Under the pieces are notes generated by a model that was not told the origin of the DNA, did no database searches, and was given only the letters and a program-made list of their open reading frames with translations. The translations under genes and the position numbers were made by a program. DNA of 64,000 nt from Epithemia pelagica (Eukaryota > Protista > Bacillariophyta): positions 1,178,001 to 1,242,000 of the forward strand of contig OX337231.1 of NCBI GenBank assembly GCA_946965045.2, given 5' to 3'. Shown in pieces: positions 4,415 to 48,556 of this stretch; the stretch's first letter is position 1, and each line of letters opens with the position of its first letter.

Positions 4415-5425
4415 TGTGTCTGTTGTGAAAGGTGTTTGCTCGACACAGGGGACGATGGTTTTGATGCTACACATTTAGAGGGAAGGTGGGGACCCATCGA
4501 TCGTGAACGATATTCACCTGTTTGCATTCTAGAGGCATGTGGGCATAAGATTCACAAGATTTGTCTCCAAATCAGGTTGGCCAAGGGATTGGAGAACTGT
4601 CCGGTGTGCGGTGTCAGTATTGAAACAGAGGGGAGAAATAATCCTAATATATTGGAGAAGCGTACTGGTAAGAAGTTTTCTATTCACGAAATTATCGAGG
4701 AATATAACGGAGAATCGATCCAGGTGGAAGAACATCATGATGATATGAATGAGAATGTGAGACAAGGCAGTGGTGACCAGAGAGTCGTCAATAACATGGG
4801 TGGAACCAATGCTGAATCAACTCCTACTATTGATAGGACTGCTACTCCTGCTACTACTGCTACTCCCTTGGTCGTGGTGGATCTGTCTGTATCACCTTTA
4901 GATGACAACAACGTTGGATCGATTGATTTATCTACCAATATGGGGGTTAGAGAAGAAACCATGGACAGTGCCCAACCCGTACCTAAAAGAGAGGATGATG
5001 GAAGAGTCATTGATCTAACCGATTCACCTCCGACACCGAGAGTATCAGATCCACAACAATGTGCCATTTGTCTGGGTACAAGTACAAGTGATTGTTTTGT
5101 GGAAGGATGTGTTCATTATTTCTGTCGTACATGTATTGCTCGTTGGATTGATCCAAGAGGAAGGACCACCAATGCCAGTGACAAATGTCCGGCATGTCGG
5201 GAGACGGTTCGTACGCTGACTTATTTTAATCCTATGAATCGGATTATTGAAAGAAAGAATGTCTCGGCGGTTGATCATGTGAATGCTTATCGGAGTGAGG
5301 TTAACCGATCGGTTGCCTGTGGAAGATGTGTGGTTTGTCACACAAGAGCAAATTGTTCGTCGGAGAGCTGCAACCATCAATTTTGTCGGTATTGTATGTA
5401 TCAGCGTAAAGAGTTTTCTGAAAGA
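4415..5425 (+). other. Three RING finger domains (one RING-H2, two RING-HC)
   Basis: CERC...CGHKIHKIC...CPVC (~4415-4610); CAIC...CVHYFCRTC...CPAC (~5060-5200); CVVC...CNHQFCRYC...CPEC (~5318-5425). Confidence 0.9.
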
Positions 5426-27074: not shown

Positions 27075-28907
27075 CTACCAGAATGTGCTGTTTGGGCAAG
27101 GAATGATACTCGGCTTATCGGACTCATGACAAACAATATGAGGTTCGTCCAAGCAACAATTTTCGTACTGAAGATTCGATTCATCGTAGCGTGATGAGAT
27201 ACTGGTGCACTTGTCTGCAATAAACCATTCCCCCATTTGCTGAAAGAACTTAAGCTTGTCCACTTTCGATGCCGTCCAACTCATGTGAAATATGATAGGG
27301 TGGACTTCGCGCTTTACAAACTTCTTCATATAATCTCGATCCCTTCGATAGGTATAGCCACCGGGGAAAAGATCTTCATCTCGTGAGTAGACTTTGATTT
27401 TGAGTGCAAAAAGACTAGCTTGCTCCTGCAACAGAGATTGCAGAACCATTTGATGACTCCGCCGACTGAGGACGTCGCCACCCATCATCAACAAAGAATT
27501 GAAGAAATGAATAGTTCGCCGGTTGTTCCGAACATAGTAGAAACCTGTATTTGCAGAGTATGTTTGGTATACCACGCGATTGCCATCATCTTGAAAGTAC
27601 AGATCGAAAGACGCGTCCTTTCGACTTGTGTTGTGGAAGAAGTCCAGAGGATTTCGATACCAAACCACATCCACATCTTGAAAAAGAACATCATAGCCGA
27701 GAAGCACGGGAAGATGAACACAGTAAATCTTGGCTAACATCATTTGCGAGTAATCATTGTTGCCATATGCTTTCGCCGCTTTTGTGGGCATGCCTGCAAA
27801 AGTATTCTTCAGGTAAACAACGGTAGGACCCCCGAGGTTATTGAGGATAGTAGCTGTCTCTTGGTCTGTGGCAAACACAACAACCGACGACGTGTCTAGA
27901 CCCCGCCGTTTGGCAGAGCAAACGAAATTCAACAAAAGCTCCACTTGTCCAAAGTTGCACATCATGACAATAATGGTGTTGCGCACGGCGACCTTTTTCA
28001 AAACTGATCGAAGAATATCCAATGTGTTGTCGAGATCCCCGAGATATTGCTGTAGACGAAGCCAAAATTGTTTGGTTGTTTCATGGTATGGGGGATAGAT
28101 CAACTTGCGATTTTCATTTGCATCTCTGTTAGCAAGAACAAGCGGATGTGTTGAATCAATTTGCTCTTTCCACTCTGGTAAACGCATGTATTTTTGGATG
28201 TGATAGGCCTCATGCTGTCCCATAATTGCCATGCATTGCCTTCGCCTTCCATCATGATGCTGAAAGACAATGTTGAGAAAGTCACAATTGGCTGTCGCAT
28301 CCTCCGCCGATACTTTGGGTATCTCAGACTGCGATATGGCCTGTTGCTTAGAAACAGGATCCGATGGCACGGCATTATGATGAGAATACATAAGGAGGAC
28401 CTCATTGTTGCTTGGGTCCGAGCGATCCAGAGGAACCCCCAAATCAAATTTTTTCGTAAAATCATCACGATCAACCTTTGCCATTGCTACCACTAGATTG
28501 TGCATTCCGTCAGGAAATCTTGGATTCGGTGTAAGTTCTGTCAGAGCTTGTTGTCGCAAATACTTGCTCTTGGTCTTGGAATCTTCATTGTCGTTGTCCT
28601 TATCTGCTGCATCATTCACTCTACCAGTATCCACGGGATTCATGAATTCTTGCCTGATCTGTTGTCGAATTATGGGAGTTTCCTTGCGTATAGCTTCTTG
28701 AACCATACTGTCCACTTGCAAGGAAGTGAAGCATTCGGACTCGATGGACAACCGAGCATAAGGCGAATCTATCGCCCCGACAATGCCTATGAAGAATAAT
28801 CCATTCAAGACTGTTATAGCGCAGGCCACGATCACCAAAATTGATCCAGTGGTTGATCTGGCTATTTGTTTTTCTTTTGGTATTGGTGGTGATGTTGGAA
28901 GTCCCAT
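27075..28907 (-). CDS. Nucleotide-diphospho-sugar transferase (GT77-like), type II membrane protein, paralog 1
   Basis: N-terminal transmembrane helix; VLFQDVDVVW DxD motif; SANTGFYY; HQ motif. Likely ATG at 28907 within ORF 27075-28982. Confidence 0.85.
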   Translation of the reverse strand: MGLPTSPPIPKEKQIARSTTGSILVIVACAITVLNGLFFIGIVGAIDSPYARLSIESECFTSLQVDSMVQEAIRKETPIIRQQIRQEFMNPVDTGRVNDAADKDNDNEDSKTKSKYLRQQALTELTPNPRFPDGMHNLVVAMAKVDRDDFTKKFDLGVPLDRSDPSNNEVLLMYSHHNAVPSDPVSKQQAISQSEIPKVSAEDATANCDFLNIVFQHHDGRRRQCMAIMGQHEAYHIQKYMRLPEWKEQIDSTHPLVLANRDANENRKLIYPPYHETTKQFWLRLQQYLGDLDNTLDILRSVLKKVAVRNTIIVMMCNFGQVELLLNFVCSAKRRGLDTSSVVVFATDQETATILNNLGGPTVVYLKNTFAGMPTKAAKAYGNNDYSQMMLAKIYCVHLPVLLGYDVLFQDVDVVWYRNPLDFFHNTSRKDASFDLYFQDDGNRVVYQTYSANTGFYYVRNNRRTIHFFNSLLMMGGDVLSRRSHQMVLQSLLQEQASLFALKIKVYSRDEDLFPGGYTYRRDRDYMKKFVKREVHPIIFHMSWTASKVDKLKFFQQMGEWFIADKCTSISSRYDESNLQYENCCLDEPHIVCHESDKPSIIPCPNSTFW

Positions 28908-29269
28908 GTTGCTTGACGTCTTGTATTCCCTGTTTTGGGAGTGCCAGATGTGGTGGGTCGATGGTCGATGGAGAACGAGCATCGATTATGTGTTACGGAC
29001 ATGTGTCACAGCCGTTTCGGGAGGCTCCCCCGGCGCGAGCATCCAGAAGTCGCGCCTTGCGAAAAAGAAAAGCACGACACACATGCGACTCGACAATTCA
29101 CCCCCGCTGGGAAGTAGGAGATGACAGTTCACCCAAAAATCGCGCATACGAGCTACAACACAATACAATAGCACGAAAATCTCAGCGAGGGAACACGAAT
29201 CAACAACAGAACAACAGGTCTCCCATCCCCTACGAAACAACGATGATACATCCTGAACTCTCATCCACT

Positions 29270-30370: not shown

Positions 30371-31540
30371 CTAGTTTACAACGTTCAGAATATCATCTTC
30401 TGTTTTCGCATGGACAAAGCTGACGATATTATCGCAGGTCATGTCAACTAATCGTTGTCGTGTCTCCAAACGACGCCATCCAGTATGAGGCGACAAAAAG
30501 ACATTTTTCAAGTCCCAAAGTTTGGAGTTTGACGGTGGCGGTTCGGTTGCGGTGACATCCAACCCCGCCCCTGCAATCATTTCCTGTTCCATACATTGAA
30601 TAAGTTCGTCTTCATTGCAAACTGCTCCACGGCTCGTATTGATGAAAAATGCGGAAGGCTTCATGGCCGAAAATTGCTTCATGCCAAAGCTGCCTCTCGT
30701 TTCATCGTTCAAGGGAGTGTGCAAACTCACATAATCTGCCTCACGCAGGACTGATTCCACATCACTAGTGCATTGAACCCGTTCATGATTACTCAACACA
30801 TGATCGGCTGGCAGTGTTCCCCGTCGACTGGTTATTAGGACATTCATTCCCAAGGCAAGGGCAATTTCGGCAACCTTGGTGCCGATTCGACCCGCTCCTC
30901 CAATGAGGCCAATCGTTTTCCCATTGATTTCTTGTAAGGGCAGCGTGAAGGGTCCAGTGAAATTAGATCGATCATTCTTCAATAGCATTTCTTGTTGTTG
31001 AAACATGCTGACAGAAAAGTTCATTAAATACGTAATCGCCATGTGTGCGACAGCCTCGGTACTATAGGTAGGAATATTGCAGACTGGAACATTGCGAGCC
31101 CTGGCTGCTTGAATGGGTAAATTATTGTATCCTGTCCCTGCTTCACACAAGAGCTTGACGGACAATGGAAACTCGTCAAAAACGTCTTTCGGCAGGGCCA
31201 TTTCTTTGGTAATGACAATGTCCGTGTCATCACCCACCATATCCAAAATTTCTTGCTTGTCTCGTACCGCATCCTGATCGCCCAATGTCAGTACGCCATC
31301 TTCACCACACACTTGTTTCAACTGACTCCAATTCAGACGGTTGTCGTAATCCAATCGAGCGGCATTCAAAAAGACCACCTTGATGGGGCGTCGGGATGAC
31401 GTGGAGAATGCCGCAGCACGGCCTCTTGCCGCAGTCCTTGTCGTCATAGAAGTAGTCCATGCATTCCGCCCGATCTTGCGGCTGCTACGACAGAATGTAG
31501 CAGTGACTTGTACGAGGCGCTTCATCGTTGCCGTTTCCAT
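30371..31540 (-). CDS. D-isomer-specific 2-hydroxyacid dehydrogenase (glycerate dehydrogenase/hydroxypyruvate reductase-like) with probable mitochondrial presequence
   Basis: GTGYNN, GxxGxIG (GGAGRIG), LHTPL..ETR, FINTSRG, AGLDV, LSPHTGW; Arg/Ser/Thr-rich N-terminus. Confidence 0.92.
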   Translation of the reverse strand: METATMKRLVQVTATFCRSSRKIGRNAWTTSMTTRTAARGRAAAFSTSSRRPIKVVFLNAARLDYDNRLNWSQLKQVCGEDGVLTLGDQDAVRDKQEILDMVGDDTDIVITKEMALPKDVFDEFPLSVKLLCEAGTGYNNLPIQAARARNVPVCNIPTYSTEAVAHMAITYLMNFSVSMFQQQEMLLKNDRSNFTGPFTLPLQEINGKTIGLIGGAGRIGTKVAEIALALGMNVLITSRRGTLPADHVLSNHERVQCTSDVESVLREADYVSLHTPLNDETRGSFGMKQFSAMKPSAFFINTSRGAVCNEDELIQCMEQEMIAGAGLDVTATEPPPSNSKLWDLKNVFLSPHTGWRRLETRQRLVDMTCDNIVSFVHAKTEDDILNVVN

Positions 31541-32677
31541 TCTTCTGCTTTCATGAGAAGTATATGATGTAATGATGATGATTATGACATCGATGATGCG
31601 TGTGGCTTGAAAAAAATGTCATAATGCGCGACCGACGCGACCGGCCCAAACGGCAGCGACACATTGGAGCCCATTGTTGCCCATTGTGCGGCATATGTTC
31701 CCTACAATACGACGTTGGCGTTGTGACTATCTCTTCCGCGATGATATGTGTGTAAGTCACACAGAGCCACCATGGTAACGTTAATGTTGATTGACTGTGA
31801 GCGGAATGATAACGAGAAGCAATATGGAAGCAACAGAAGCACCAAAACACAACAAGAGCAGCCTCGCTTGTGACTGACAGTCGACCAAAATACTCAATGC
31901 TCGTTTACGTCAAGAGCAGTCTTTCGATCCAATAAGCCTCAAAAGGCAGTGTATCAGATTTATGGGTGTGAAGAACAAGAACGAGATGGACCTCGCACAG
32001 CGAACGCAACAACACCTACATTACGCTGCAAGACTTCGTGGCACCGCTTTTGGGCTGCACTAGGAAGCGAACCAATGGGTTCAGTAAGAAGAAGAGCGGG
32101 CGAATATGTCGTATATGACGCCTGGTCCCAGCTACAAACGCTACCGTTTCAAGCAGTTTTGGGAGGCTTTCTCCGAATTCAGGAGCCGCTATGGTGGGAG
32201 GCAAGGCTACCACCACATACGGAACGAAAAAATTCATCATTGGTTCGTGTTGCTACAGAAGTAAGGGAGGATTGGGAACCAAACGAGGATATAGATCCTG
32301 CTCGATTCTTACTGTTTTCGTTTCTATGGAAAGAAGCCATGGTTCGAATGTACAGAAATTGGATTAGGTTACGTTCACATATCTTCCCAAAATGTGCTGT
32401 TTGGACACGGAATTATACTTGGACTCCTGGGGTGATGGCAAACAATGTTTGGTTTCGGCAAGCAACAACTCGAATATGTGTTTGCAGACCGTAGGTTCGA
32501 TTCATTGTAGCGAGATGAAATACTGGTGCAGTTGTCTGCAACAAACCATTCTCCCATTTGTTGAAAGAACTTGAGCTTGTCCACTTTCGATTCCGTCCAA
32601 CTCATGTGGAATATTAAAGGGTGGACCTCGCCCTTTACAAACTTCTTCATGTAATCGCGATGATGATGGAACGTGCA
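31375..32677. repeat. Segmental duplication unit A, copy 1 (copy 2 at 36166-37470)
   Basis: Near-identical sequence from ccaccttgatggggcg to ggaacgtgca at both loci. Confidence 0.95.
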
Positions 32678-32810
32678 CGACGACACGGGTTCTGGAGGAT
32701 GCAAGCTCCAGGGTTTCCTTTACTCTGCCCGTCCGTTTCAAATGTGGGCTACCAAGGTCAATGCTGTCGATCTGCAGACCTGGTAGTTTTTGTCTTTTCG
32801 ATGCCGACAT
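32375..32810 (-). pseudogene. Out-of-frame chimera: 5' start of the Crinkler-like gene fused to the 3' end of GT77 paralog 2
   Basis: MSASKRQKLPGL... (ATG 32810) joins at 32677/32678 to sequence coding CTFHHHRDYMKK...FWEDM in a different frame. Confidence 0.8.
32678..32805. repeat. 128-bp direct repeat unit B, copy 1 (copy 2 at 36040-36167)
   Basis: cgacgacacgggttctggagg...tttcgatgcc at both loci. Confidence 0.95.
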
Positions 32811-33028
32811 TGCCAACCAGAAGCAGCAAACAAATGCCACAATCATCGAATTCGGCGACTGACTCTGACCCTGGGACTTACTTGCAACAGCTCCGTGTCT
32901 TGCTTCGTGTGAAAGAGCTCTCTTGAATAGAGAAGGTTGGGGTTATGGCTGTTATCTCAAACCCTATTGTAACATCTCTGATTAGTAAAATGATAGCAGC
33001 GCGGCTTTTCGTTTCTCTTGGGTTTTCT

Positions 33029-34091
33029 TTACCCCCAAGCAGGGGTGAGTGAGTCCCGCGTGATCGAGTACGCTATCACGAACCATCTCCATTCATTGTC
33101 ATGTTCCACGTCGTTGTCAGATCGACCAAGGGTGAAAAGTGCGACGACAGGAACAACTGCCATGGTAAAGAAAGGAAGGTAAGCATGCGAAAGCACAGTA
33201 GGACCAATGTACAAGTGAGGTCGGCTTACGGAGTGTTCCACCAGTCCAAAAATACTCGATCATCAGTAAATCTCTTCCTCGATGTGACGTTGGGACAAAT
33301 TCGGCCAATGTGTCGAAGGGTACAGTTACGCCTCCGACACCGAATCCAACCATGAATCGGCAAAATATCAAACTCCACAAATTGTTGGTGAACGCAGTTG
33401 CAAAACCAAAGACACAAATTATGGCAGCGGTCATGGAAAAGACAGGCTTGCGTCCGAAATGGTCACCCAAATAGCCGGAGATGAGTGTTCCAGTACTAGC
33501 CCCAAGAAACACTGCACTCGTGATACTGGCAGTTTCTTCGTCGGTCAAACTCCACTGCGCTTGGAAAACAACAGCCAGAAAGCTCAGCAACAAAACTTCC
33601 ATAGCATCGGCCGCAAAGCAAAGGCCAGCAGCCACCAAAATGAGCCACTGAAAGATACCCATACCAAGCTTCTCAATCGCATCGTCGATCGAAATCCTCA
33701 GGTCGTCGCCATTGTCGTCGCTTTGAGGAAGGATTTGTGGTTTGGCATCTGTCACATGACTTGAAATTGATTCCAGAGCAGCGTTTTTGACCGAACGAAC
33801 CGCACCTTGAAGATCTCCTGTGGAATCAAGGGGGGAATCAAGTGCATTTAGGCCAACACTGACCGATGAGTGCTCCTGGTTTTTCGTTATATCCGCTGAC
33901 GCTGTAGAGGTGTTAGAGTTTTCTTGCGATGCCGTTGGTCGTTTCTCCGATGGCAAGTCAAGATCAGATGCTGATGATGACAACATCTTCCATTGTTGTC
34001 TCTGATAGCTTTCATATCTTTGATCTTTATCATAGGAGCCATCGTCGTCAGTAGGGAAATCGGTGAGATTTGTGGAACTGGAACTTGACAT
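33029..34091 (-). pseudogene. 3'-truncated MFS transporter (SV2/sugar-porter-like)
   Basis: ADAMEVLLLSFL, GYLGDHFGRKP, CRFMVGFGVGG, AEFVP..HRG; intron 33157-33229. Similarity ends after WRWFVIA (~33070), so only the N-terminal half is present. Confidence 0.8.
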
Positions 34092-34693
34092 GAAGACAAC
34101 AACAAACGGGTGTTCTCAATGGATATACTTGCAATGTGTCTGCTTCATTCTGCATCTATCGGAAATCGGAAGACGGACTCATTCAGTATCCCCCAGCGAG
34201 GGTATATCTGACCTTGAAATACAGAAACTTTTTCCTGAAATTTACCCCCGCTTGGGGTTAAGCAAAATAAGTTTGATCCCTGGATACACTCTCTAGCGGT
34301 AGCATCGGTATCTAGAGTAAAAACGTGAATGAATCGCCATGACTTTCGATATCCGAGGGAGTAGGCTCATCAGTTCCTACCCCTCCTACCCAAGAACAAA
34401 CAATGGAAGGGACGGACCTGCAACGGTAATGGGCGACGACGAAGAGCAAGCACAAAGTTCATCAGCAGATGCTTTAACTGTTGACTTAGATGATTTGTTG
34501 AGAATGCCTGAGACTCCCGTCGTCTCAACACCTTGAACCCCCAAAGGAAGCATTTGCATCTTCCGGCTTCCTCCGAGCAGTCCTTGGTTGAGCCTGCCAC
34601 GTTTCCGCGACAAGCTCGTCAGCGATTGGAAGCTTCAATCGACCCAACACAGCATGCCTTTTTCCAAACCTTCGCACTTCAATGAATGACTCT

Positions 34694-36331
34694 TCATGCC
34701 TGCAAATTGAAGATGAACTCGTCTGTTAGACGCATTTTGCATACACAGCTCGAAAAATCGTCAGCGAAATAGAAAGTGCAGCGATTGGCGTTTGGCGGAA
34801 CGCCATGACTTTGTCTTGGACCCCGGAAGTCGACAACAAGATACGCCTGTGTATCCACCTCACTGTATTTTCCAGCAAAACGCGACAGATGATCGCCAAT
34901 TTGTCTTCCCTCCACTAACAATTCAATAGACCATTTCAAGTTGCTGTTGATGTAAAAGTCAAGCTCACCAGTTACCACTTTTCCATTGATTATGGCCTTC
35001 GTATTGAGTTCTGGAATCAATGTATGCACAACAGGCAGGAGCTTGTTTGCAGCCTCATTGAAGAGTTGTTGGAATACGGCTTCTTTCGGAAAATTTCCCT
35101 GGTCCCTTGAAACTGATATCCTCCGTTTCGACATGGACTTGACGGCTTCGACGACAAGCCATTCTAGGGATTCCGGCGGATCAATCGCCCGACCTGGAAA
35201 GAAATGGGTGTTGTAGTACAGATTAGCAGCCATACATGAGAATCCGCCGTACTTGTTAAATAATCCTTTCCTTACGTATCGAAAGGATAACTCCGACGAT
35301 AACACCTCAACTTTCGCAATCTCGGATTGAATCAAGCGATTGGCAATTTCTTCCTTGGCATTAGATGGTAGAGTCTCCGGCTTAGTGAAGCAACGTTCAA
35401 GCTTGTTGACAAATGTCGGAGAACGTAAGGCAATTAGGGCCTCGTCTTCAGTATAGTCATCTCTCTTGCAATTGGGGCTCAAAAGGAACATGCCAGCCAT
35501 GATCACACCGGTGTGAAAGAGATCACCGTTGAGGGAGGCATAGCCGAGGAGAGCGTCGCGAAATTTTTCCCAATCCTTCATGCCTTGCCAATGCTGCGTA
35601 TGAAGGTGATAAAGTTCTTGTGCTTCTACGAGAGAGAAGTGGGGAGAGGCGTGATCGAGTCCTTCAAAATATGTAGGTGATGGGCCCAACGTCTCGTCGT
35701 AAGTCGTGGCAGCCACAATGATAAGCTTCTTATCCAAAGGATACTTGACGAGTGTCTTCAAGAGAAATGCCCAGAACTCGTCAAACTTTGGTCCATATGC
35801 ATTCTGGCACTCGTCGAACAAAATCCACACTTTATTTTTTCTTTCCTTGAATGCATCGACTGTCGCGATGCGGCTGGTCGAAATGGAATAGTAATTTCTC
35901 AATTCTTCCAAGATGGTAGAGATGGCCGCCTCGGTGCCGTACACATCAGCTTGGTACACTTCGTCGTCGCTACTCTGACGTATTTCATCCGCCAGTAATT
36001 CAAGAAGTGAGGATTTTCCCGTGCTCGGCGAGCCTCCGACGACGACACGGGTTCTGGAGGATGCAAGATCCAGGGTTTCCTTTACTCTGCCCGTCCGTTT
36101 CAAATGTGGGCTACCAAGGTCAATGCTGTCGATCTGCAGACCTGGTAGTTTTTGTCTTTTCGATGCCACCTTGATGGGGCGTCGGGATGACGTGGAGAAT
36201 GCAGCAGCACGGCCTCTTGCCGCCGTTCTTGTCGTCACAGAAGTTGTCCATGCATTCGGCCCGATCTTGAGGCTGCTACGACAGAATGTAGCAGTGACTT
36301 GTGCGAGGCGCTTCATCGTTACCGTTTCCAT
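34694..36331 (-). CDS. Chimeric 545-aa ORF: 2-hydroxyacid dehydrogenase presequence fused to a Crinkler(CRN)-type P-loop NTPase + PD-(D/E)xK nuclease
   Basis: The first 55 aa copy the dehydrogenase N-terminus. These are followed by GSPSTGKSSLL (Walker A), ILFDECQ (Walker B), EAVFQQLF...GELDFYIN..WSIELL and YLVVDFR. Confidence 0.75.
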   Translation of the reverse strand: METVTMKRLAQVTATFCRSSLKIGPNAWTTSVTTRTAARGRAAAFSTSSRRPIKVASKRQKLPGLQIDSIDLGSPHLKRTGRVKETLDLASSRTRVVVGGSPSTGKSSLLELLADEIRQSSDDEVYQADVYGTEAAISTILEELRNYYSISTSRIATVDAFKERKNKVWILFDECQNAYGPKFDEFWAFLLKTLVKYPLDKKLIIVAATTYDETLGPSPTYFEGLDHASPHFSLVEAQELYHLHTQHWQGMKDWEKFRDALLGYASLNGDLFHTGVIMAGMFLLSPNCKRDDYTEDEALIALRSPTFVNKLERCFTKPETLPSNAKEEIANRLIQSEIAKVEVLSSELSFRYVRKGLFNKYGGFSCMAANLYYNTHFFPGRAIDPPESLEWLVVEAVKSMSKRRISVSRDQGNFPKEAVFQQLFNEAANKLLPVVHTLIPELNTKAIINGKVVTGELDFYINSNLKWSIELLVEGRQIGDHLSRFAGKYSEVDTQAYLVVDFRGPRQSHGVPPNANRCTFYFADDFSSCVCKMRLTDEFIFNLQA

Positions 36332-37470
36332 TCTTCTGCTCTCATGAGAAGCATATGAGATGTAATGATGATGATTATGACATCGATGATGCGTGTGGCT
36401 TGAAAAAAATGTCATAATGCGCGACCGACGCGACCGGCCCAAACGGCAGCGACACATTGGAGCCCATTGTTGCCCATTGTGCGGCATATGTTCCCTACAA
36501 TACGACGTTGGCGTTGTGACTATCTCTTCCGCGATGATATGTGTGTAAGTCACACAGAGCCACCATGGTAACGTTAATGTTGATTGACTGTGAGCGGAAT
36601 GATAACGAGAAGCAATATGGAAGCAACAGAAGCACCAAAACACAACAAGAGCAGCCTCGCTTGTGACTGACAGTCGACCAAAATACTCAATGCTCGTTTA
36701 CGTCAAGAGCAGTCTTTCGATCCAATAAGCCTCAAAAGGCAGTGTATCAGATTTATGGGTGTGAAGAACAAGAACGAGATGGACCTCGCACAGCGAACGC
36801 AACAACACCTACATTACGCTGCAAGACTTCGTGGCACCGCTTTTGGGCTGCACTAGGAAGCGAACCAATGGGTTCAGTAAGAAGAAGAGCGGGCGAATAT
36901 GTCGTATATGACGCCTGGTCCCAGCTACAAACGCTACCGTTTCAAGCAGTTTTGGGAGGCTTTCTCCGAATTCAGGAGCCGCTATGGTGGGAGGCAAGGC
37001 TACCACCACATACGGAACGAAAAAATTCATCATTGGTTCGTGTTGCTACAGAAGTAAGGGAGGATTGGGAACCAAACGAGGATATAGATCCTGCTCGATT
37101 CTTACTGTTTTCGTTTCTATGGAAAGAAGGCATTGTTCGAATGTGCAGAAATTGGATTAGGTAACGTTCACATGTCTTCCCAAAATGTGCTGTTTGGACA
37201 CGGAATTATACTTGGACTCCTGGGGTGATGGCAAACAATGTTTGGTTTCGGCAAGCAGCAACTCGGATATGTGTTTGCAGACCGTAGGTTCGATTCATTG
37301 TAGCGAGATGAAATACTGGTGCAGTTGTCTGCAACAAACCATTCTCCCATTTGTTGAAAGAACTTGAGCTTGTCCACTTTCGATTCCGTCCAACTCATGT
37401 GGAATATTAAAGGGTGGACCTCGCCCTTTACAAACTTCTTCATGTAATCGCGATGATGATGGAACGTGCA
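36166..37470. repeat. Segmental duplication unit A, copy 2
   Basis: Matches 31375-32677. Confidence 0.95.
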
Positions 37471-39072
37471 GCCACCGGGGAAATATTCTTCATCCACGGA
37501 GTAGACTTTGATTTTGAGTGCATAAAGACTAGCATGTTCTTGCAGAAGTGCGTGTAAGGCAGATTGATGACTCCGTCTCATGAGAATTTCATCTCCCATC
37601 ATCAAAAACGAATTGAAAAAATGAACAGTTCGTCGGTTGTTGCGAACATAGTAAAAGCCCGTATTCGCAGAGTAGGTTCGATACATCATACGATTACCGT
37701 CATCTTGAAAGTACATATCGAAAGAAGCATCCGGTCGACTTGTGTTGTGGAAGAAGTCCAGAGGATTTTGATACCAAACCATATCCACATCTTGGAAAAG
37801 AACATCATATCCCAGAAGCACAGGTAGATGAACACAATAAACCTTGGCCAGCATCATTTTGGAGTAGGTTTCGTCACCATAGGTACCAGCAGCCTGAGTA
37901 GGCATGTCCGCAAACGTGTTCTTCAGGTAGACAACGGTAGGACCTCCGACTTGCGTTACAATGTCTGCAGTTTCTTGATCAGTGGCAAACACGACGATCG
38001 AAGAGAGGTCAAGACCGCGACGTTTGGAGGAGCAAAAGAAGTTCAACAACAGCTCGGATTGCCCAAAGTTGCACACCATTACCACGACGGTTTTTCGCAT
38101 GGCGACCTTTTCGAAAAGTGGGCGAAGAAAGTCCAATGTTTTCTCAAGATCTCCGAGGTACTTTTGCAAATGACGCCAATGCTGGCTTGTTGTTACCGGG
38201 AACGGGGGAGCCACAAACCTTGTCCTTCCATTTGCATCTCTGTTCGCAAGAACAAGAGGATGTGATGGATCCAACTTGTCTTCTTCGTCTGGTAGCCGCA
38301 TGTACTTTTGAATGTGATAGGCCTCATGCTGTCCCAAAATGGCCATGCATTGCCTTCTCTCACCACTATGATCCTGCAACACAATGTGGAGAAAGTCACA
38401 ATTGGCTGTCGCATCTTCTGCCGATACGACGGGTATCCCAGTCTGGGACATGGCCTCCTTCTTTAGAGTAGGGTTCGATGGCATGGCATTGCTATTCGAA
38501 TACATGAGGAGAACCTCATTGTTGTTAGAGTCCGAATGATCCAGAGGAACTCCCAAATCAAACTTTTTGGTAAACTCATCACGATCAACCTTTGTCATTC
38601 CTACCACCAGATTGTGCATGCCGTCGGGAAATCTCGGATCGGGATCTTTTTCAACTGCTGCTTGACCTCGTATATGCTTGGTCTGGACTTTTGAGTCGGC
38701 GGCATTGGAGTCATCCTTTGTTTCTTGGTGCTTTCCAAACGTTGTAGTATTCCTTAGTTCTCGTGTAATCTGTTCCCGAAGTTCTTGTGTGATCTGTTCT
38801 CGAAGTTCTTGCGTGATCTGCTCTCGAAGCGAGGCAGTTTTCTTCTGGACCTCTTGTTGAACCATGTGGTCCACTTGCAAGGAAGAAAAGCACTCGGATT
38901 CAATCGTTGGTGGACTTGGCGGCGCACTGATAGATCGATCAAACGCAGCAAAGAATGATCCGTTCAAGACCATGACAGAACAGGTCAAGACCATGAGAAT
39001 CACAAAAGTCGGTCCTTTGGAAGACAACCATGACGCGGATCGGTTCCATGATGCTGGTGGGGGCAGTGTCAT
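37168..39072 (-). CDS. Nucleotide-diphospho-sugar transferase (GT77-like), paralog 2
   Basis: Clearly similar to 27075-28907; VLFQDVDMVW; N-terminal transmembrane helix; short REQITQEL x3 repeat. Confidence 0.85.
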   Translation of the reverse strand: MTLPPPASWNRSASWLSSKGPTFVILMVLTCSVMVLNGSFFAAFDRSISAPPSPPTIESECFSSLQVDHMVQQEVQKKTASLREQITQELREQITQELREQITRELRNTTTFGKHQETKDDSNAADSKVQTKHIRGQAAVEKDPDPRFPDGMHNLVVGMTKVDRDEFTKKFDLGVPLDHSDSNNNEVLLMYSNSNAMPSNPTLKKEAMSQTGIPVVSAEDATANCDFLHIVLQDHSGERRQCMAILGQHEAYHIQKYMRLPDEEDKLDPSHPLVLANRDANGRTRFVAPPFPVTTSQHWRHLQKYLGDLEKTLDFLRPLFEKVAMRKTVVVMVCNFGQSELLLNFFCSSKRRGLDLSSIVVFATDQETADIVTQVGGPTVVYLKNTFADMPTQAAGTYGDETYSKMMLAKVYCVHLPVLLGYDVLFQDVDMVWYQNPLDFFHNTSRPDASFDMYFQDDGNRMMYRTYSANTGFYYVRNNRRTVHFFNSFLMMGDEILMRRSHQSALHALLQEHASLYALKIKVYSVDEEYFPGGCTFHHHRDYMKKFVKGEVHPLIFHMSWTESKVDKLKFFQQMGEWFVADNCTSISSRYNESNLRSANTYPSCCLPKPNIVCHHPRSPSIIPCPNSTFWEDM

Positions 39073-44118: not shown

Positions 44119-45847
44119 ATGAAGACCAACGACCTCCGTCGACGGTCAGCTCCAAGTCCTCGTCGTTCAGAAGATGCCTCTGAACAATCAGGATGGCCAC
44201 AGTTTCACTGGACACAACCGAATATCACCAACACTTCAACCTCCAGAACCTCCTCCTCCAGTCAATGTTCCATGGTTCGAATTGCGTCAGCACTCCTCGT
44301 CTTGTTTCTCGGCTCTCATTTTGCCGCTATAGTAAAGCATTGGATCCGTTTTCATCGTCACTTGGGCCATGCTGATGGGATACACCGACATGGTTTGGGT
44401 TTGTTATGGGAGGAAGATGCAATGCCGTCTGGACTTTCCTACCTGTTTGCCTTGTCCGATCAACCATCCGACTACGAACGAAACAAACAAGCCCATCTCA
44501 AGAAACTCAACAATGGCTATGTCTTTCACATTGTCTTTAGTACTGGTTGTAACGCCTTTCAAGATTGGCAATCCTATGCCTTTTTCTATCATGTCATGGC
44601 GTCGGGCTTTACTGGTAACGTATCAAGAACAAATTCAAGGACCCATGTCGAGTCAGTTCCACTTACATACCACTCCAGATTTCTCGTTTGAAGCAAGGAA
44701 CCAAACCCAGGGAAAGAAGTACAAGTTCTTCAACAAACCTTTTGGGATGCGTCATTGGATGACACACAGCCTCGGCTTTCCCATTCATACATCAGAAGAA
44801 TGGGACAAGACAATCGTTGTGTTGATGGATCCAGATCAATTTCTCATGCGTCCCTTTGAAAAGATTAATATGACAGACGAACGTGAATTGTGGAAAGACC
44901 CCAACGGGTATCGAGTGGTGGGAAAAGGCCAGCCTATGGGTGCCAATTATTGTTATGGAGGCAATTATATCAAGAATGACCTGAACGTTTCCGAGTTGCT
45001 GGAATTGCCCGAACTGGCTGCATCCAAAGATTCGGGGCTGCGTGACGCCACTCCCGAGTCCATGGCGTCACACTATGCGGTGGGGCCGCCCTATGTAGTG
45101 GAGGCTACCGATATGTTTCAGATTGTGCAGATGTGGGCTTCCTTGGTGGTTCCGATTCACCAACAAATGTACACGAATGGGACAGGCAATGTGTTTATGG
45201 CGGAAATGTATGCTTATTCTTGTGCTGCTGCACACTTGCATTTGCCCCATCAATTGTCACGATCCTTTATGATTTCGTCCACCATTGACCTACAAGGATG
45301 TTTTCGATGCGAAGCTTGGAACGATTGGGTGGATTACACGCCACGGTCATCACCCTCCAGATCACAAAACCTTGTCCCCGCTGGATTCTCGGGCACGACG
45401 ACGGCTCTCTCAACACGGAGGGAAACCCGTCCTTCCTCCATATGTTCCTTGGACTATGGTTGGGTTCCTCATAGCTTTCACTATTGCCAATATTATTATC
45501 TCGGTCCGTACAAGTTTTCCAAATACAAGGTACCATCGGGACACAATGAGTCGCACAAGAATTTCTTGTCTTGCGAACATGCCCTGTACGAGGAACCACC
45601 ACACAACATCATGACCTTGTACAATTCTTCCACCGACTTTTCCAACAAGTCCATTTCGTATTCCAGCATGCGAGAACGTCGTCGCATGGCATTTGCCCTT
45701 TGTCAAACTCTTCCGCGCATGAATGCGATGGCCACCTTTTACAAACAACACCATTGTCTTCGTTCAGCTGGCGACAGTTTGGACCTTACAACCAACGACG
45801 ACGCGCATACACATGCCAATTTCAGCAAAGTTTTTCGGTATGCCTAG
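44119..45847 (+). pseudogene. HPAT/SERGT (GT95/GT96)-like O-glycosyltransferase, frameshifted copy
   Basis: HIVFSTGCNAFQDWQ, NKPFGMRHW, MDPD, AEMYAY. Relative to 46835-48556 it lacks 56 nt at 44622/44623. Confidence 0.8.
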
Positions 45848-46834: not shown

Positions 46835-48556
46835 CTAGTAGGCGTGTCGAAAGACTTTGCTATAGTTTGCTGGTCGTTCGTTTGTATGGTTCGAGTCCCC
46901 CTTGTCACCATTCGAAACAGGGCAGTTATGGTCTTTGTAAAAGGTGGCCATGGCATTCATGCGCGGAAGGGTTTGGCAAAGTGAAAATGCAACGCGACGC
47001 CGTTGAGAGGGCGAAAGGGATGTTTTAGAAAAATCATCGGAATAGTTGTATACGTCCATAATGTTGTGCGGTGGCTCTTTATATAGTGGGTGTTCACACG
47101 ACAAAAAATTCTTTTTCGACTCCGCATGTCCAGACGGAACATTGTGTTTGAAAAACTTGTACGGACCGAGGCGATAGGATTGACAATAGTGAAAGCAATG
47201 TGGTATCCATTCATAGTCCAAGGAACAAATGGAGGAGGACGTTTGGTTGCTCTTTGGCTCTGTCGCACCCATAGTCGTAGCCACCGTATCGGTTGGGGCG
47301 TCGGATGGGACACGGTGCTGGGGTGTTGTTGGTGGTAAGGGTTCCGGTGTTTTCTCGATCCAATCGTACCAAGCTTCGCATCCTGCTGGTCCTTCGTGAT
47401 CGTTGGTCGCCGATATCATGAAGGATCGAGATAATTGATGGGGCAAGTGTAAATGCGCAGCAGCACAAGAATAGGCATACATTTCCGCCATGAACGGATT
47501 GCCTGTCCCATTCTTGTACATTTGTTGGTGAATAGGAACCACCAAGGTAGCCCACATCTGCACAATCTGAAACATATCAGTGGCTTCCACTACATAGGGC
47601 GGTCCCACGGCATAGTGTGACGCCATGGAATGAGGAGTGGCGTCACGCAACCCCGACATGGTGGAATCATCATTGGAGAGTTCGGGCATTTCCAGCAACT
47701 GGGAAACATTTAGGGCATTGTTGATATAATTGCCTCCATAGCAATACATGGCACCCATAGGCTGGCCTTTTCCCACCACTCGATATCCGTTGGGATCTTT
47801 CCACAATTCGCGTTCGTCCGTCATATTAATCTTTTCAAAGGGACGGATAAGAAATTCATCTGGATCCATCAACACAATGATCGTCTTGTCCCATTCTTGT
47901 GATGTATGATTGGGAAAGCCGAGGCTGTTTGTCATCCAATGACGCATCCCAAAAGGTTTGTTGAAGAACTTGTACTTCTTTCCCTGGGTTTGGTTCCTTG
48001 CTTCATACGAGAAATCTGGAGTGGTATGTAAGTGGAACTGACTCGACATGAGTCCTTGAATTTGTTCCTGATGCACTTTGCGTAATTGATTGGCTTCTTC
48101 TTGAGTGGAACACGAGGCAATCCTGGTAACGTCACCAGTAAAACCCGACGCCATAACATGATAGAAAAAGGCATAGGATTGCCAATCTTGAAAGGCGTTG
48201 CAACCAGTACTAAAGACAATGTGAAAGACGTAGCCATTGTTGAGTTCCTTGAGATGGGCTTGTTTCTTGCGCAAGGCGTCTTGTTTTGGGTCGGACCAAA
48301 GGGAGGATAACACCTCCTCCAATGGAAGTTCCAAATAATGACCCATCTCATCATGGAATCGACTCCAATAATGAACAATGGCCGCCAGATGGGAAGCAAG
48401 TGCCAATACCAGTAGGACAGACCCTATCCGAACTGACCAGAATTTGCGGGTGGTGGTCGTCCAGACTCGTTCTTCAGGAAGAGGACGAGTATTTGGGTCC
48501 AGAGATGATGACCTTGGATACGGGTGACGGGTTTTCATTGTGCTCGTCGTATTCAT
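46835..48556 (-). CDS. HPAT/SERGT (GT95/GT96)-like peptidyl O-glycosyltransferase, intact copy
   Basis: Same motifs as the frameshifted copy; N-terminal transmembrane helix; uninterrupted 573-aa ORF. Confidence 0.8.
   Translation of the reverse strand: MNTTSTMKTRHPYPRSSSLDPNTRPLPEERVWTTTTRKFWSVRIGSVLLVLALASHLAAIVHYWSRFHDEMGHYLELPLEEVLSSLWSDPKQDALRKKQAHLKELNNGYVFHIVFSTGCNAFQDWQSYAFFYHVMASGFTGDVTRIASCSTQEEANQLRKVHQEQIQGLMSSQFHLHTTPDFSYEARNQTQGKKYKFFNKPFGMRHWMTNSLGFPNHTSQEWDKTIIVLMDPDEFLIRPFEKINMTDERELWKDPNGYRVVGKGQPMGAMYCYGGNYINNALNVSQLLEMPELSNDDSTMSGLRDATPHSMASHYAVGPPYVVEATDMFQIVQMWATLVVPIHQQMYKNGTGNPFMAEMYAYSCAAAHLHLPHQLSRSFMISATNDHEGPAGCEAWYDWIEKTPEPLPPTTPQHRVPSDAPTDTVATTMGATEPKSNQTSSSICSLDYEWIPHCFHYCQSYRLGPYKFFKHNVPSGHAESKKNFLSCEHPLYKEPPHNIMDVYNYSDDFSKTSLSPSQRRRVAFSLCQTLPRMNAMATFYKDHNCPVSNGDKGDSNHTNERPANYSKVFRHAY

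Follow-up and report, generated by a model that had tools for sequence, protein, structure and literature searches.

A circularly permuted copy of an NTPase-gene segment inside a duplicated host locus of the diatom Epithemia pelagica, with a transposon end at its closure joint

The window analysed here is a stretch of 64,000 nucleotides of the diatom Epithemia pelagica (GenBank assembly GCA_946965045.2, contig OX337231.1, positions 1,178,001 to 1,242,000 of the forward strand), which is G000:C4:1178001-1242000 in our numbering of the assembly (G000; 60.5 Mb, 23 contigs). Between a dehydrogenase gene and a glycosyltransferase gene it carries an insert composed of parts of an NTPase gene and a fragment of a major facilitator superfamily (MFS) sugar-transporter gene. 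Two pairs of direct repeats, A and B, were found by self-BLAST and a repeat finder. The order is X-A1-B1-Y...Z-B2-A2-W, as a preliminary description of the window had stated; X and W are the host flanks, A is a host repeat, B, Y and Z are parts of the NTPase gene, and M (or MFS') is the MFS fragment. In the self-BLAST comparison the A copies (31375-32677 and 36166-37470) are 98.5% identical over 1305 columns, with one 2-bp indel, and both methods pair B1 (32677-32805) with B2 (36039-36167). The insert proper (32678-36165) fits exactly between the two A copies and, when compared with a donor found elsewhere on the same contig, is a circular permutation of it. The features in and around the insert are the following.

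27075 to 28982, reverse strand: GT77-1, an older GT77 paralogue with a Pfam Nucleotid_trans match, which serves as outgroup for the tail of A and for the A|W boundary
30371 to 31540, reverse strand: intact D-isomer 2-hydroxyacid (glycerate-type) dehydrogenase of 389 aa, made up of X and the first 166 bp of A1
31375 to 32677, forward strand: A1, the left host-segment copy, with the dehydrogenase 5' end, an 834-bp intergenic region and a dead GT77 3' fragment
32502 to 32846, reverse strand: truncated NTPase 5' piece (Y-B1), a 114-codon open reading frame (ORF) that continues, in a different frame, into the dead GT77 tail of A1
32677 to 32805, forward strand: B1, the first copy of a 128/129-bp terminal redundancy, matching 36039-36167 and equal to donor B
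32806 to 33030, forward strand: Y, the NTPase start-codon region and its 5' flank, ending in a T-run and colinear after B in the donor
33031 to 33074, forward strand: 44-nt filler of the closure joint, the outermost 44-45 nt of an AcademH-like terminal inverted repeat
33075 to 34693, reverse strand: M, which comprises the intergenic region upstream of the MFS sugar-transporter gene and the 5' portion of that gene (first-exon ORF 33117-34091), up to a break within it
34694 to 36331, reverse strand: chimeric ORF of 545 codons, in which a 55-residue dehydrogenase presequence (A2) is joined in frame to NTPase residues 15-504 (B2-Z)
36039 to 36167, forward strand: B2, the second copy of the terminal redundancy, with one substitution relative to the donor and B1
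36166 to 37470, forward strand: A2, the right host-segment copy, which gives promoter and presequence to the chimera and the 3' end to GT77-2
37168 to 39072, reverse strand: GT77-2, an intact GT77-type glycosyltransferase of 634 aa (A2 and W) with a Pfam Nucleotid_trans match

The host locus can still be read in its earlier form. The 389-aa dehydrogenase ORF, which matches Pfam 2-Hacid_dh_C and 2-Hacid_dh and shows 74% full-length identity to a homologue from a diatom (Epithemia), runs across X|A1; the 634-aa GT77-2, for which identical and allelic proteins are present in the European Nucleotide Archive (ENA), runs across A2|W. The older paralogue GT77-1 matches GT77-2 without a break across A2|W (27172-28529 against 37286-38642, 80% DNA identity). 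Because homology runs across both boundaries, X|A and A|W are the ancestral adjacencies; A was therefore once single-copy, and the joints J1 and J3 at the two ends of the insert are derived. Judged by this homology, X-A-W is the ancestral host locus, as the preliminary description had proposed in reconstructing a dehydrogenase/GT77 locus from it, and both host genes survived the event intact. The breakpoint at the start of A falls at dehydrogenase residue 55, exactly between an unconserved presequence and the conserved mature domain. The best-named relatives of the window's proteins are in diatoms, e.g. Seminavis, Attheya, Epithemia and Mayamaea.

There are four novel joints: from the end of A into B, from the end of Y into a transposon end, from the transposon into MFS', and from the end of B to the start of A. 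At J1 (32677|32678) 1 bp (A) is common to the end of A and the start of B, and at J3 (36167|36168) 2 bp (CC, 36166-36167) are common to the end of B and the start of A, the 1-2-bp microhomology that had been noted earlier; on one side of the closure joint (J2b) it is 0 bp. A simple tandem duplication is ruled out by the spacings, which differ between the A copies (4,791-4,793 bp) and the B copies (3,362 bp). Capture by a Helitron or other rolling-circle transposon is ruled out as well: the termini of a Helitron (5'-TC...CTRR-3', a subterminal hairpin, insertion between A and T) are absent from the ends of the insert, which read CGACGAC... and ...GATGCC, with adjoining bases GTGCA and ACCTTG.

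Where did the inserted sequence come from? The whole assembly was searched with the insert as query, and one other copy was found, at G000:C4:1041934-1045255, on the same contig, 168 kb to the left and inverted. Window 33075-36173 corresponds to positions 4591 to 1492 of this donor locus (L002) with 99.07% identity, and window 32677-33030 to L002 1627 to 1270; Y in the donor runs from L002 1492 down to 1270, and the Y of the insert has two indels relative to it. The donor segment (L002 4591 to 1270) is single-copy and colinear, MFS'-Z-B-Y, with B present once, whereas the insert reads B-Y|MFS'-Z-B. The donor contains an intact 504-aa NTPase ORF (L002 1458-2972) and a complete MFS/sugar-transporter gene with a full Sugar_tr match, the later exons of which lie outside the copied segment; the MFS piece in the window matches Pfam Sugar_tr/MFS_1 in its N-terminal part only and is 99% identical to the donor. 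The repeating unit measures 3,362 bp, made up of 3,322 bp of donor sequence and the filler with indels subtracted, and the insert comprises 1.04 such units. By this alignment the insert has a terminal redundancy of 128 bp and is a true circular permutation of its single-copy donor. The preliminary description had deduced the permutation from the window itself and had foreseen a donor with a full MFS gene and colinear Z-B-Y, and this is what the assembly holds; natural adjacency of Y and the MFS fragment, the arrangement set against that deduction, is not what the donor displays. As the donor is intact, the segment was copied and inserted, not cut and pasted.

The closure joint proved to be more elaborate than a direct junction. 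Y had been described as abutting the truncated MFS gene at ~33070; this does not hold, as a 44-nt transposon end lies between them. Y ends at 33030 in its T-run, the MFS piece begins at 33075, and the 44 nt in between are absent from the donor. In a search of the assembly the filler matched ~29 dispersed copies, up to 98%. When these were aligned with their flanks, the common sequence began exactly at the first base of the filler and the left flanks were unrelated; the filler is therefore the outermost 44-45 nt of a repeat end. The genome contains 292 termini of this family, against 0 for a reversed control. By our estimate, a random 44-nt piece of the 1.1-kb element would start within a base of the terminus in well under 1% of cases, and the filler therefore marks a real transposon end.

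The family to which the filler belongs is a terminal-inverted-repeat transposon with 120-bp and 1.09-kb non-autonomous forms and target duplications of 9-10 bp (10 bp in six copies, L005, L008/L024, L017, L018, L020 and L021; 9 bp in L012). The same 21-nt termini bound copies of 7.8 kb, in which there are ORFs for a RecQ-like helicase and for a large DUF6589 protein. Elements of 7.7-7.8 kb lie at G000:C4:2025227-2033035 (L025), C4:3401457-3409265, C6:1603324-1611151 and C11:2179778-2187508; in L025 a DEAD/Helicase_C ORF is convergent with a 1,732-aa DUF6589 ORF, and there are no matching 10-bp flanks. The subfamily that matches the filler (1.1 kb and 120 bp) shares only ~21 terminal nt with L025. 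A Mutator-like source, which the 9-10 bp duplications and long inverted repeats had suggested, was replaced by an AcademH-like one in view of the helicase and DUF6589 ORFs and the target-duplication length; PMC10045372, in which Kojima (2020) is cited for these elements, gives 9-10 bp target duplications for AcademH transposons. The filler family resembles AcademH in its terminal inverted repeats, in its target duplications and perhaps also, through the 7.8-kb copies, in the pair of helicase and DUF6589 ORFs, as autonomous AcademH elements have a helicase next to the transposase. Unlike an AcademH element, the window locus lacks a second end and a target duplication, and of the first end it has just 44 nt; the locus is therefore not the site of a transposon insertion, nor was the insert carried as cargo. 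No copy of the family was found in the donor region (C4:1034000-1052000) or elsewhere in the window. The filler derives either from an element that stood next to Y in the copied allele or from the free end of an excised element.

Two other arrangements were seen within this family. At G000:C17:848676-848748 two transposon termini lie in the same orientation, 52 bp apart, and may be a filler-like or a duplicated end fragment. One AcademH-like non-autonomous element contains a ~700-bp dispersed repeat (L015 614-1314; G000:C9:2620757-2621457) that is present in more than 30 copies at 86-94%.

Of interest is the gene fusion at J3. The chimera starts at an ATG (36331) that was copied from that of the dehydrogenase (31540) and shares its frame with B2-Z, and A2 supplies the whole 836-bp upstream intergenic region as well. 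The 55 residues that the chimera takes from the dehydrogenase are rich in arginine, serine and threonine, include a single acidic residue, and by this composition are probably a mitochondrial presequence. At the other end of the insert, the first 57 codons of the Y-B1 ORF are the donor N-terminus, and the frame differs from that of the GT77 tail ORF (32375-32704).

Other haplotypes were judged at the protein level, by exact-sequence cluster look-ups in ENA. The NTPase cluster comprises P0034, which is the G000 donor, P0032, another allele, P0001, an intact protein of 504 aa, and P0033. The last is of 545 aa, with the same presequence-NTPase junction and four residues different from the window chimera, and its ENA contig also holds two MFS' ORFs and a GT77-2 allele. 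Read from this protein, J3 is present in a second, non-identical allele and is a heritable structure. The window chimera, P0033 and P0001 share four residues that are absent from both donor alleles (P0034 and P0032); P0001 and P0033 have identical bodies and one further shared derived residue, and the two MFS' ORFs likewise share one. The likeness of P0001 and P0033 could reflect a second unit in the insert of that haplotype, or gene conversion.

The ENA contigs themselves are to be read with caution. An argument from their contents (450,908 bp: dehydrogenase and donor allele, no chimera; 182,385 bp: intact NTPase and chimera) is not relied on. A length of 183,863 bp is given for the contig of P0159, P0161 and P0281, although among these are proteins 408 kb from each other in G000 (GT77-2 at C4:1.215 Mb, a paralogue at C4:0.808 Mb); near the GT77 paralogues, one of the two assemblies, that in ENA or G000, is rearranged or chimeric.

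Donor and insert differ by 0.87% (27 substitutions in 3,100 bp), with one stretch of 671 bp free of differences; B1 is identical to donor B. Dating the event by this divergence was rejected because of the four residues that the insert has in common with P0001 and P0033. Judged from these residues, much of the donor-insert difference is allelic or lineage-specific and is not a measure of time since copying from the G000 donor.

How did the insert arise? Tentatively, we favour a single copy-based rearrangement, replicative and of the type termed microhomology-mediated break-induced replication or fork stalling and template switching (MMBIR/FoSTeS), in which a chromosomal template would have been read in two overlapping passes. 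A growing DNA end would have left the dehydrogenase/GT77 locus at the end of A (32677) and re-primed with 1 bp of homology on the inverted donor 168 kb away on the same chromosome, copying B and Y (353 bp). Copying would have run up to a transposon end and taken 44 nt of the transposon. A second priming on this donor, within the MFS gene and ~3.3 kb farther upstream, would have led to the copying of MFS'-Z-B (3.1 kb); the end would then have used 2 bp of homology to come back to the start of A, a point 1.3 kb upstream of its departure, and continued into W. With each re-entry upstream of the point of departure, B (128 bp) would be duplicated on the donor track and A (1.3 kb) on the host track; on the latter, departure is at 32677 and re-entry at the equivalent of 31375. 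We infer that all joints come from one event and were made by synthesis rather than ligation, and that a transposon now absent stood beside Y in the copied allele.

A single event is the economical view, since B1 and B2 are one base apart and the insert occupies precisely the junction of the two A copies; had A first been duplicated in tandem, a later insertion at that very point would be a coincidence. Replicative template switching has just this signature, microhomology of 0-2 bp together with two duplications that both follow from re-entry upstream of departure. Such re-entrant copying explains the 128-bp and 1.3-kb duplications better than the cutting and pasting of a circle with staggers of these sizes, and a filler that begins at an exact transposon terminus fits copying through a real boundary between transposon and flank.

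Several points weigh against two-pass copying of the chromosome. There is no transposon at the present donor, so that an unobserved allele or a later excision is needed. A circular template saves one switch on the donor and explains the 1.04 units as a continuous read. Synthesis and ligation, moreover, cannot be told apart by sequence. Finally, the differences between A1 and A2 are not a clean sign of error-prone synthesis, even though they cluster near the junction-proximal ends. They amount to 18 substitutions and the 2-bp indel and are strongly clustered: 11 substitutions and the indel lie in 31412-31565 (154 bp), none in a 770-bp core, seven substitutions in 32337-32473 (137 bp) and none in the final 204 bp, which places the clusters 37-190 bp from J3 and 204-340 bp from J1. 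In the coding part of the presequence five of the nine differences alter a residue. When GT77-1 is used as outgroup, derived states occur in both A copies; the clusters were for this reason dropped as proof of error-prone synthesis, and conversion or an allelic mosaic would fit the pattern better than error-prone synthesis of one copy.

The preliminary description had proposed that a ~3.4-kb donor segment circularized, reopened at B and was inserted, as in duplications mediated by extrachromosomal circular DNA (eccDNA). The permutation and the 128-bp and 1.3-kb duplications on which it drew stand; the physical circle is a proposal, and linear template switching gives the same four joints. In the form that we consider a genuine possibility, a 3.37-kb fragment (MFS'-Z-B-Y) released from a copy of the donor would have been closed into a circle by end joining that took up the 44-nt end of an excised transposon. 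A broken host replication end would have invaded the circle at B, gone round it 1.04 times while copying, so that B appears twice, and rejoined the host at the start of A. It would account for an insert that is an exact circular permutation, with terminal redundancy, of a single-copy colinear donor, and for a closure joint at which microhomology on one side is 0 bp and the filler starts at a natural transposon end, i.e. a ligatable physical DNA end; the same flip of order is the published argument in cattle and in human segmental duplications (PMC7450558, PMC7188851). A weak lead in its favour is the presence on another ENA contig of an intact NTPase and a chimera with identical bodies and shared derived residues, which a second unit would yield, but this lead leans on contig assignments that were found unreliable. 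The circle is a deduction from the order of sequences, it saves nothing in number of joints, and the published cases have neither terminal redundancy nor a kilobase-scale host duplication. The linear template needs an unobserved transposon beside Y, the circular one an unobserved circle and a captured transposon end, and both need four novel joints. It is rather doubtful, though conceivable, that a small circle of 3.37 kb with the ATPase gene and the MFS 5' part trapped the end of an excising AcademH-type transposon and was copied in rolling-circle fashion by a broken fork for 1.04 turns, possibly for 2 in another haplotype.

Could the locus instead have been assembled in several events? An insertion or duplication might have been reshaped later, by insertion of a transposon at Y/MFS' and deletion of most of it, by unequal crossing-over or conversion between the B or the A repeats, or by both. 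The transposon family is young and mobile (copies 97-98% alike, with 120-bp and 1.1-kb derivatives and 7.8-kb copies), and the 770-bp identical core of A1 and A2, together with the 671-bp difference-free stretch between donor and insert, suggests later conversion. We nevertheless regard such a history as improbable: a single event would need fewer steps, the insert is placed precisely where A meets A, and with B1 and B2 one base apart and A1 and A2 identical in their core there is no sign that the parts differ in age. Far less probable still is an assembly artefact, by mis-joining of haplotypes or through chimeric reads. The G000 donor and insert do carry different allelic variants, which implies some mixing of haplotypes along the contig, and ENA contigs seem to break around the locus; but P0033, which spans J3 and lies on an independent ENA contig beside two MFS' ORFs and a GT77-2 allele, is a strong argument to the contrary, since it places J3 in a second allele. 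The copies, moreover, differ by 1-1.5% and are not identical, and the joints are precise, one of them being in frame.

That new gene copies arise through DNA circles or serial template switching is argued, at the level of sequence, mainly from permuted interspersed duplications, of which the published cases are mostly large, old and blurred at their joints. In the colour-sidedness KIT alleles of cattle, in human ‘cSDP’ segmental duplications (PMC7450558) and in eccDNA-mediated duplications (Takahashi and Innan, 2020; PMC7188851), the flip in order argues for circular intermediates. Chicote et al. (2020; PMC7450558) have also invoked MMBIR/FoSTeS to explain how permuted duplications are inserted, and breakpoint sequence cannot separate end joining from MMBIR (PMC7450558, PMC7188851). 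The window resembles the cattle KIT and cSDP cases in having a permuted copy and a retained colinear donor that is not in tandem with it, in the 0-2 bp of microhomology or small insertions at the joints and in a breakpoint linked to an interspersed repeat; in neither has a circle been observed. Those cases span tens to hundreds of kb, whereas the present one is of kilobase scale and in a diatom. It also departs from them in containing more than one unit (the 128-bp redundancy), in its 1.3-kb host duplication and in the 44-nt transposon end at the closure. The simple reopening of a circle would leave one unit, no redundancy and no large host duplication, and this is not what the window presents.

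Templated insertions attributed to MMBIR/FoSTeS, in human copy-number variants and cancer genomes, take the form of a tandem duplication with a templated insertion at its joint. The window shares with these the several joints with 0 to a few bp of microhomology, the stringing together of copied segments and the retention of the donor, and further the upstream return that yields a host duplication and a short templated piece (tens of nt) between longer ones. It is unlike them in that its two long pieces come from one donor and overlap, so as to read as 1.04 turns of a circle, and in that the short piece starts exactly at a transposon terminus, which is not expected of random choice of template.

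What does the copied gene encode? The protein analysis was carried out with the intact donor gene; the Y-B1 and B2-Z pieces of the window were not joined. The 504-aa NTPase has weak matches to AAA-type Pfam families, and its Walker A (G64 K65) and Walker B (D132) residues are conserved across 24 relatives. In the predicted model (pLDDT, the predicted local distance difference test, 89) the N-terminal 370 residues resemble STAND/AAA+ ATPases (SSO1545, CED-4, NLRs). The C-terminal domain is compatible with a PD-(D/E)xK nuclease in the model, because its secondary structure has the order alpha-beta-beta-beta-alpha-beta and the acidic residues D417/E429 are conserved. A language-model feature search placed the protein near AAA_35/PDDEXK-type proteins and one cluster named Crinkler; a sequence search of the PDB returned nothing useful. 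At the start of the ORF (L002 1458-1499; window 32805-32846) there is a hydrophobic stretch of 13 residues that is absent from P0032 and not conserved in relatives, and the start codon, or a signal-like N-terminus, is uncertain.

The gene that Z-B-Y rebuilds had been termed Crinkler-like. Z, B and Y are indeed colinear in the intact donor gene, but the Crinkler header (Pfam PF20147) had no match at E<=0.1 in the donor protein or the upstream ORFs (1.4 kb), nor at E<=0.01 in ten relatives, longer ones included. In a possible likeness to Crinkler effectors whose C-terminal module is a P-loop NTPase with a restriction-endonuclease-like domain, the STAND/AAA+ NTPase is followed by a domain that may be a nuclease; unlike them, the protein is without the header domain and has diatom proteins as relatives, all identifiable ones being diatom proteins of ~500-600 aa. 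‘Crinkler-like’ applies to the C-terminal module at most.

Elsewhere in the window, 44485-45745 and 46934-48265 form an inverted repeat, with arms of ~0.85-1.3 kb that are 77-96% identical and ~1.2 kb apart.

The window adds to the known kind of permuted duplication a terminal redundancy, a kilobase-scale host duplication, a transposon-end filler and an in-frame fusion made in one step. Within 6 kb, all four joints, both ancestral adjacencies and the intact donor are resolved to the single base. A copy longer than one unit, set inside a kilobase-scale host duplication, points to copying over cut-and-paste, and a closure joint at the exact end of a mobile transposon family ties transposon activity to the event. 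It is also an instance of gene birth in one step, whereby a host promoter and presequence were fused in frame to a complete NTPase body and both host genes remained intact. The fusion persists in at least two alleles, and population data could decide between the models. Were the circle to prove true, the locus would be a natural, nucleotide-resolved case of eccDNA-templated gene duplication, one that also made an in-frame, probably mitochondrion-targeted chimera in a diatom.

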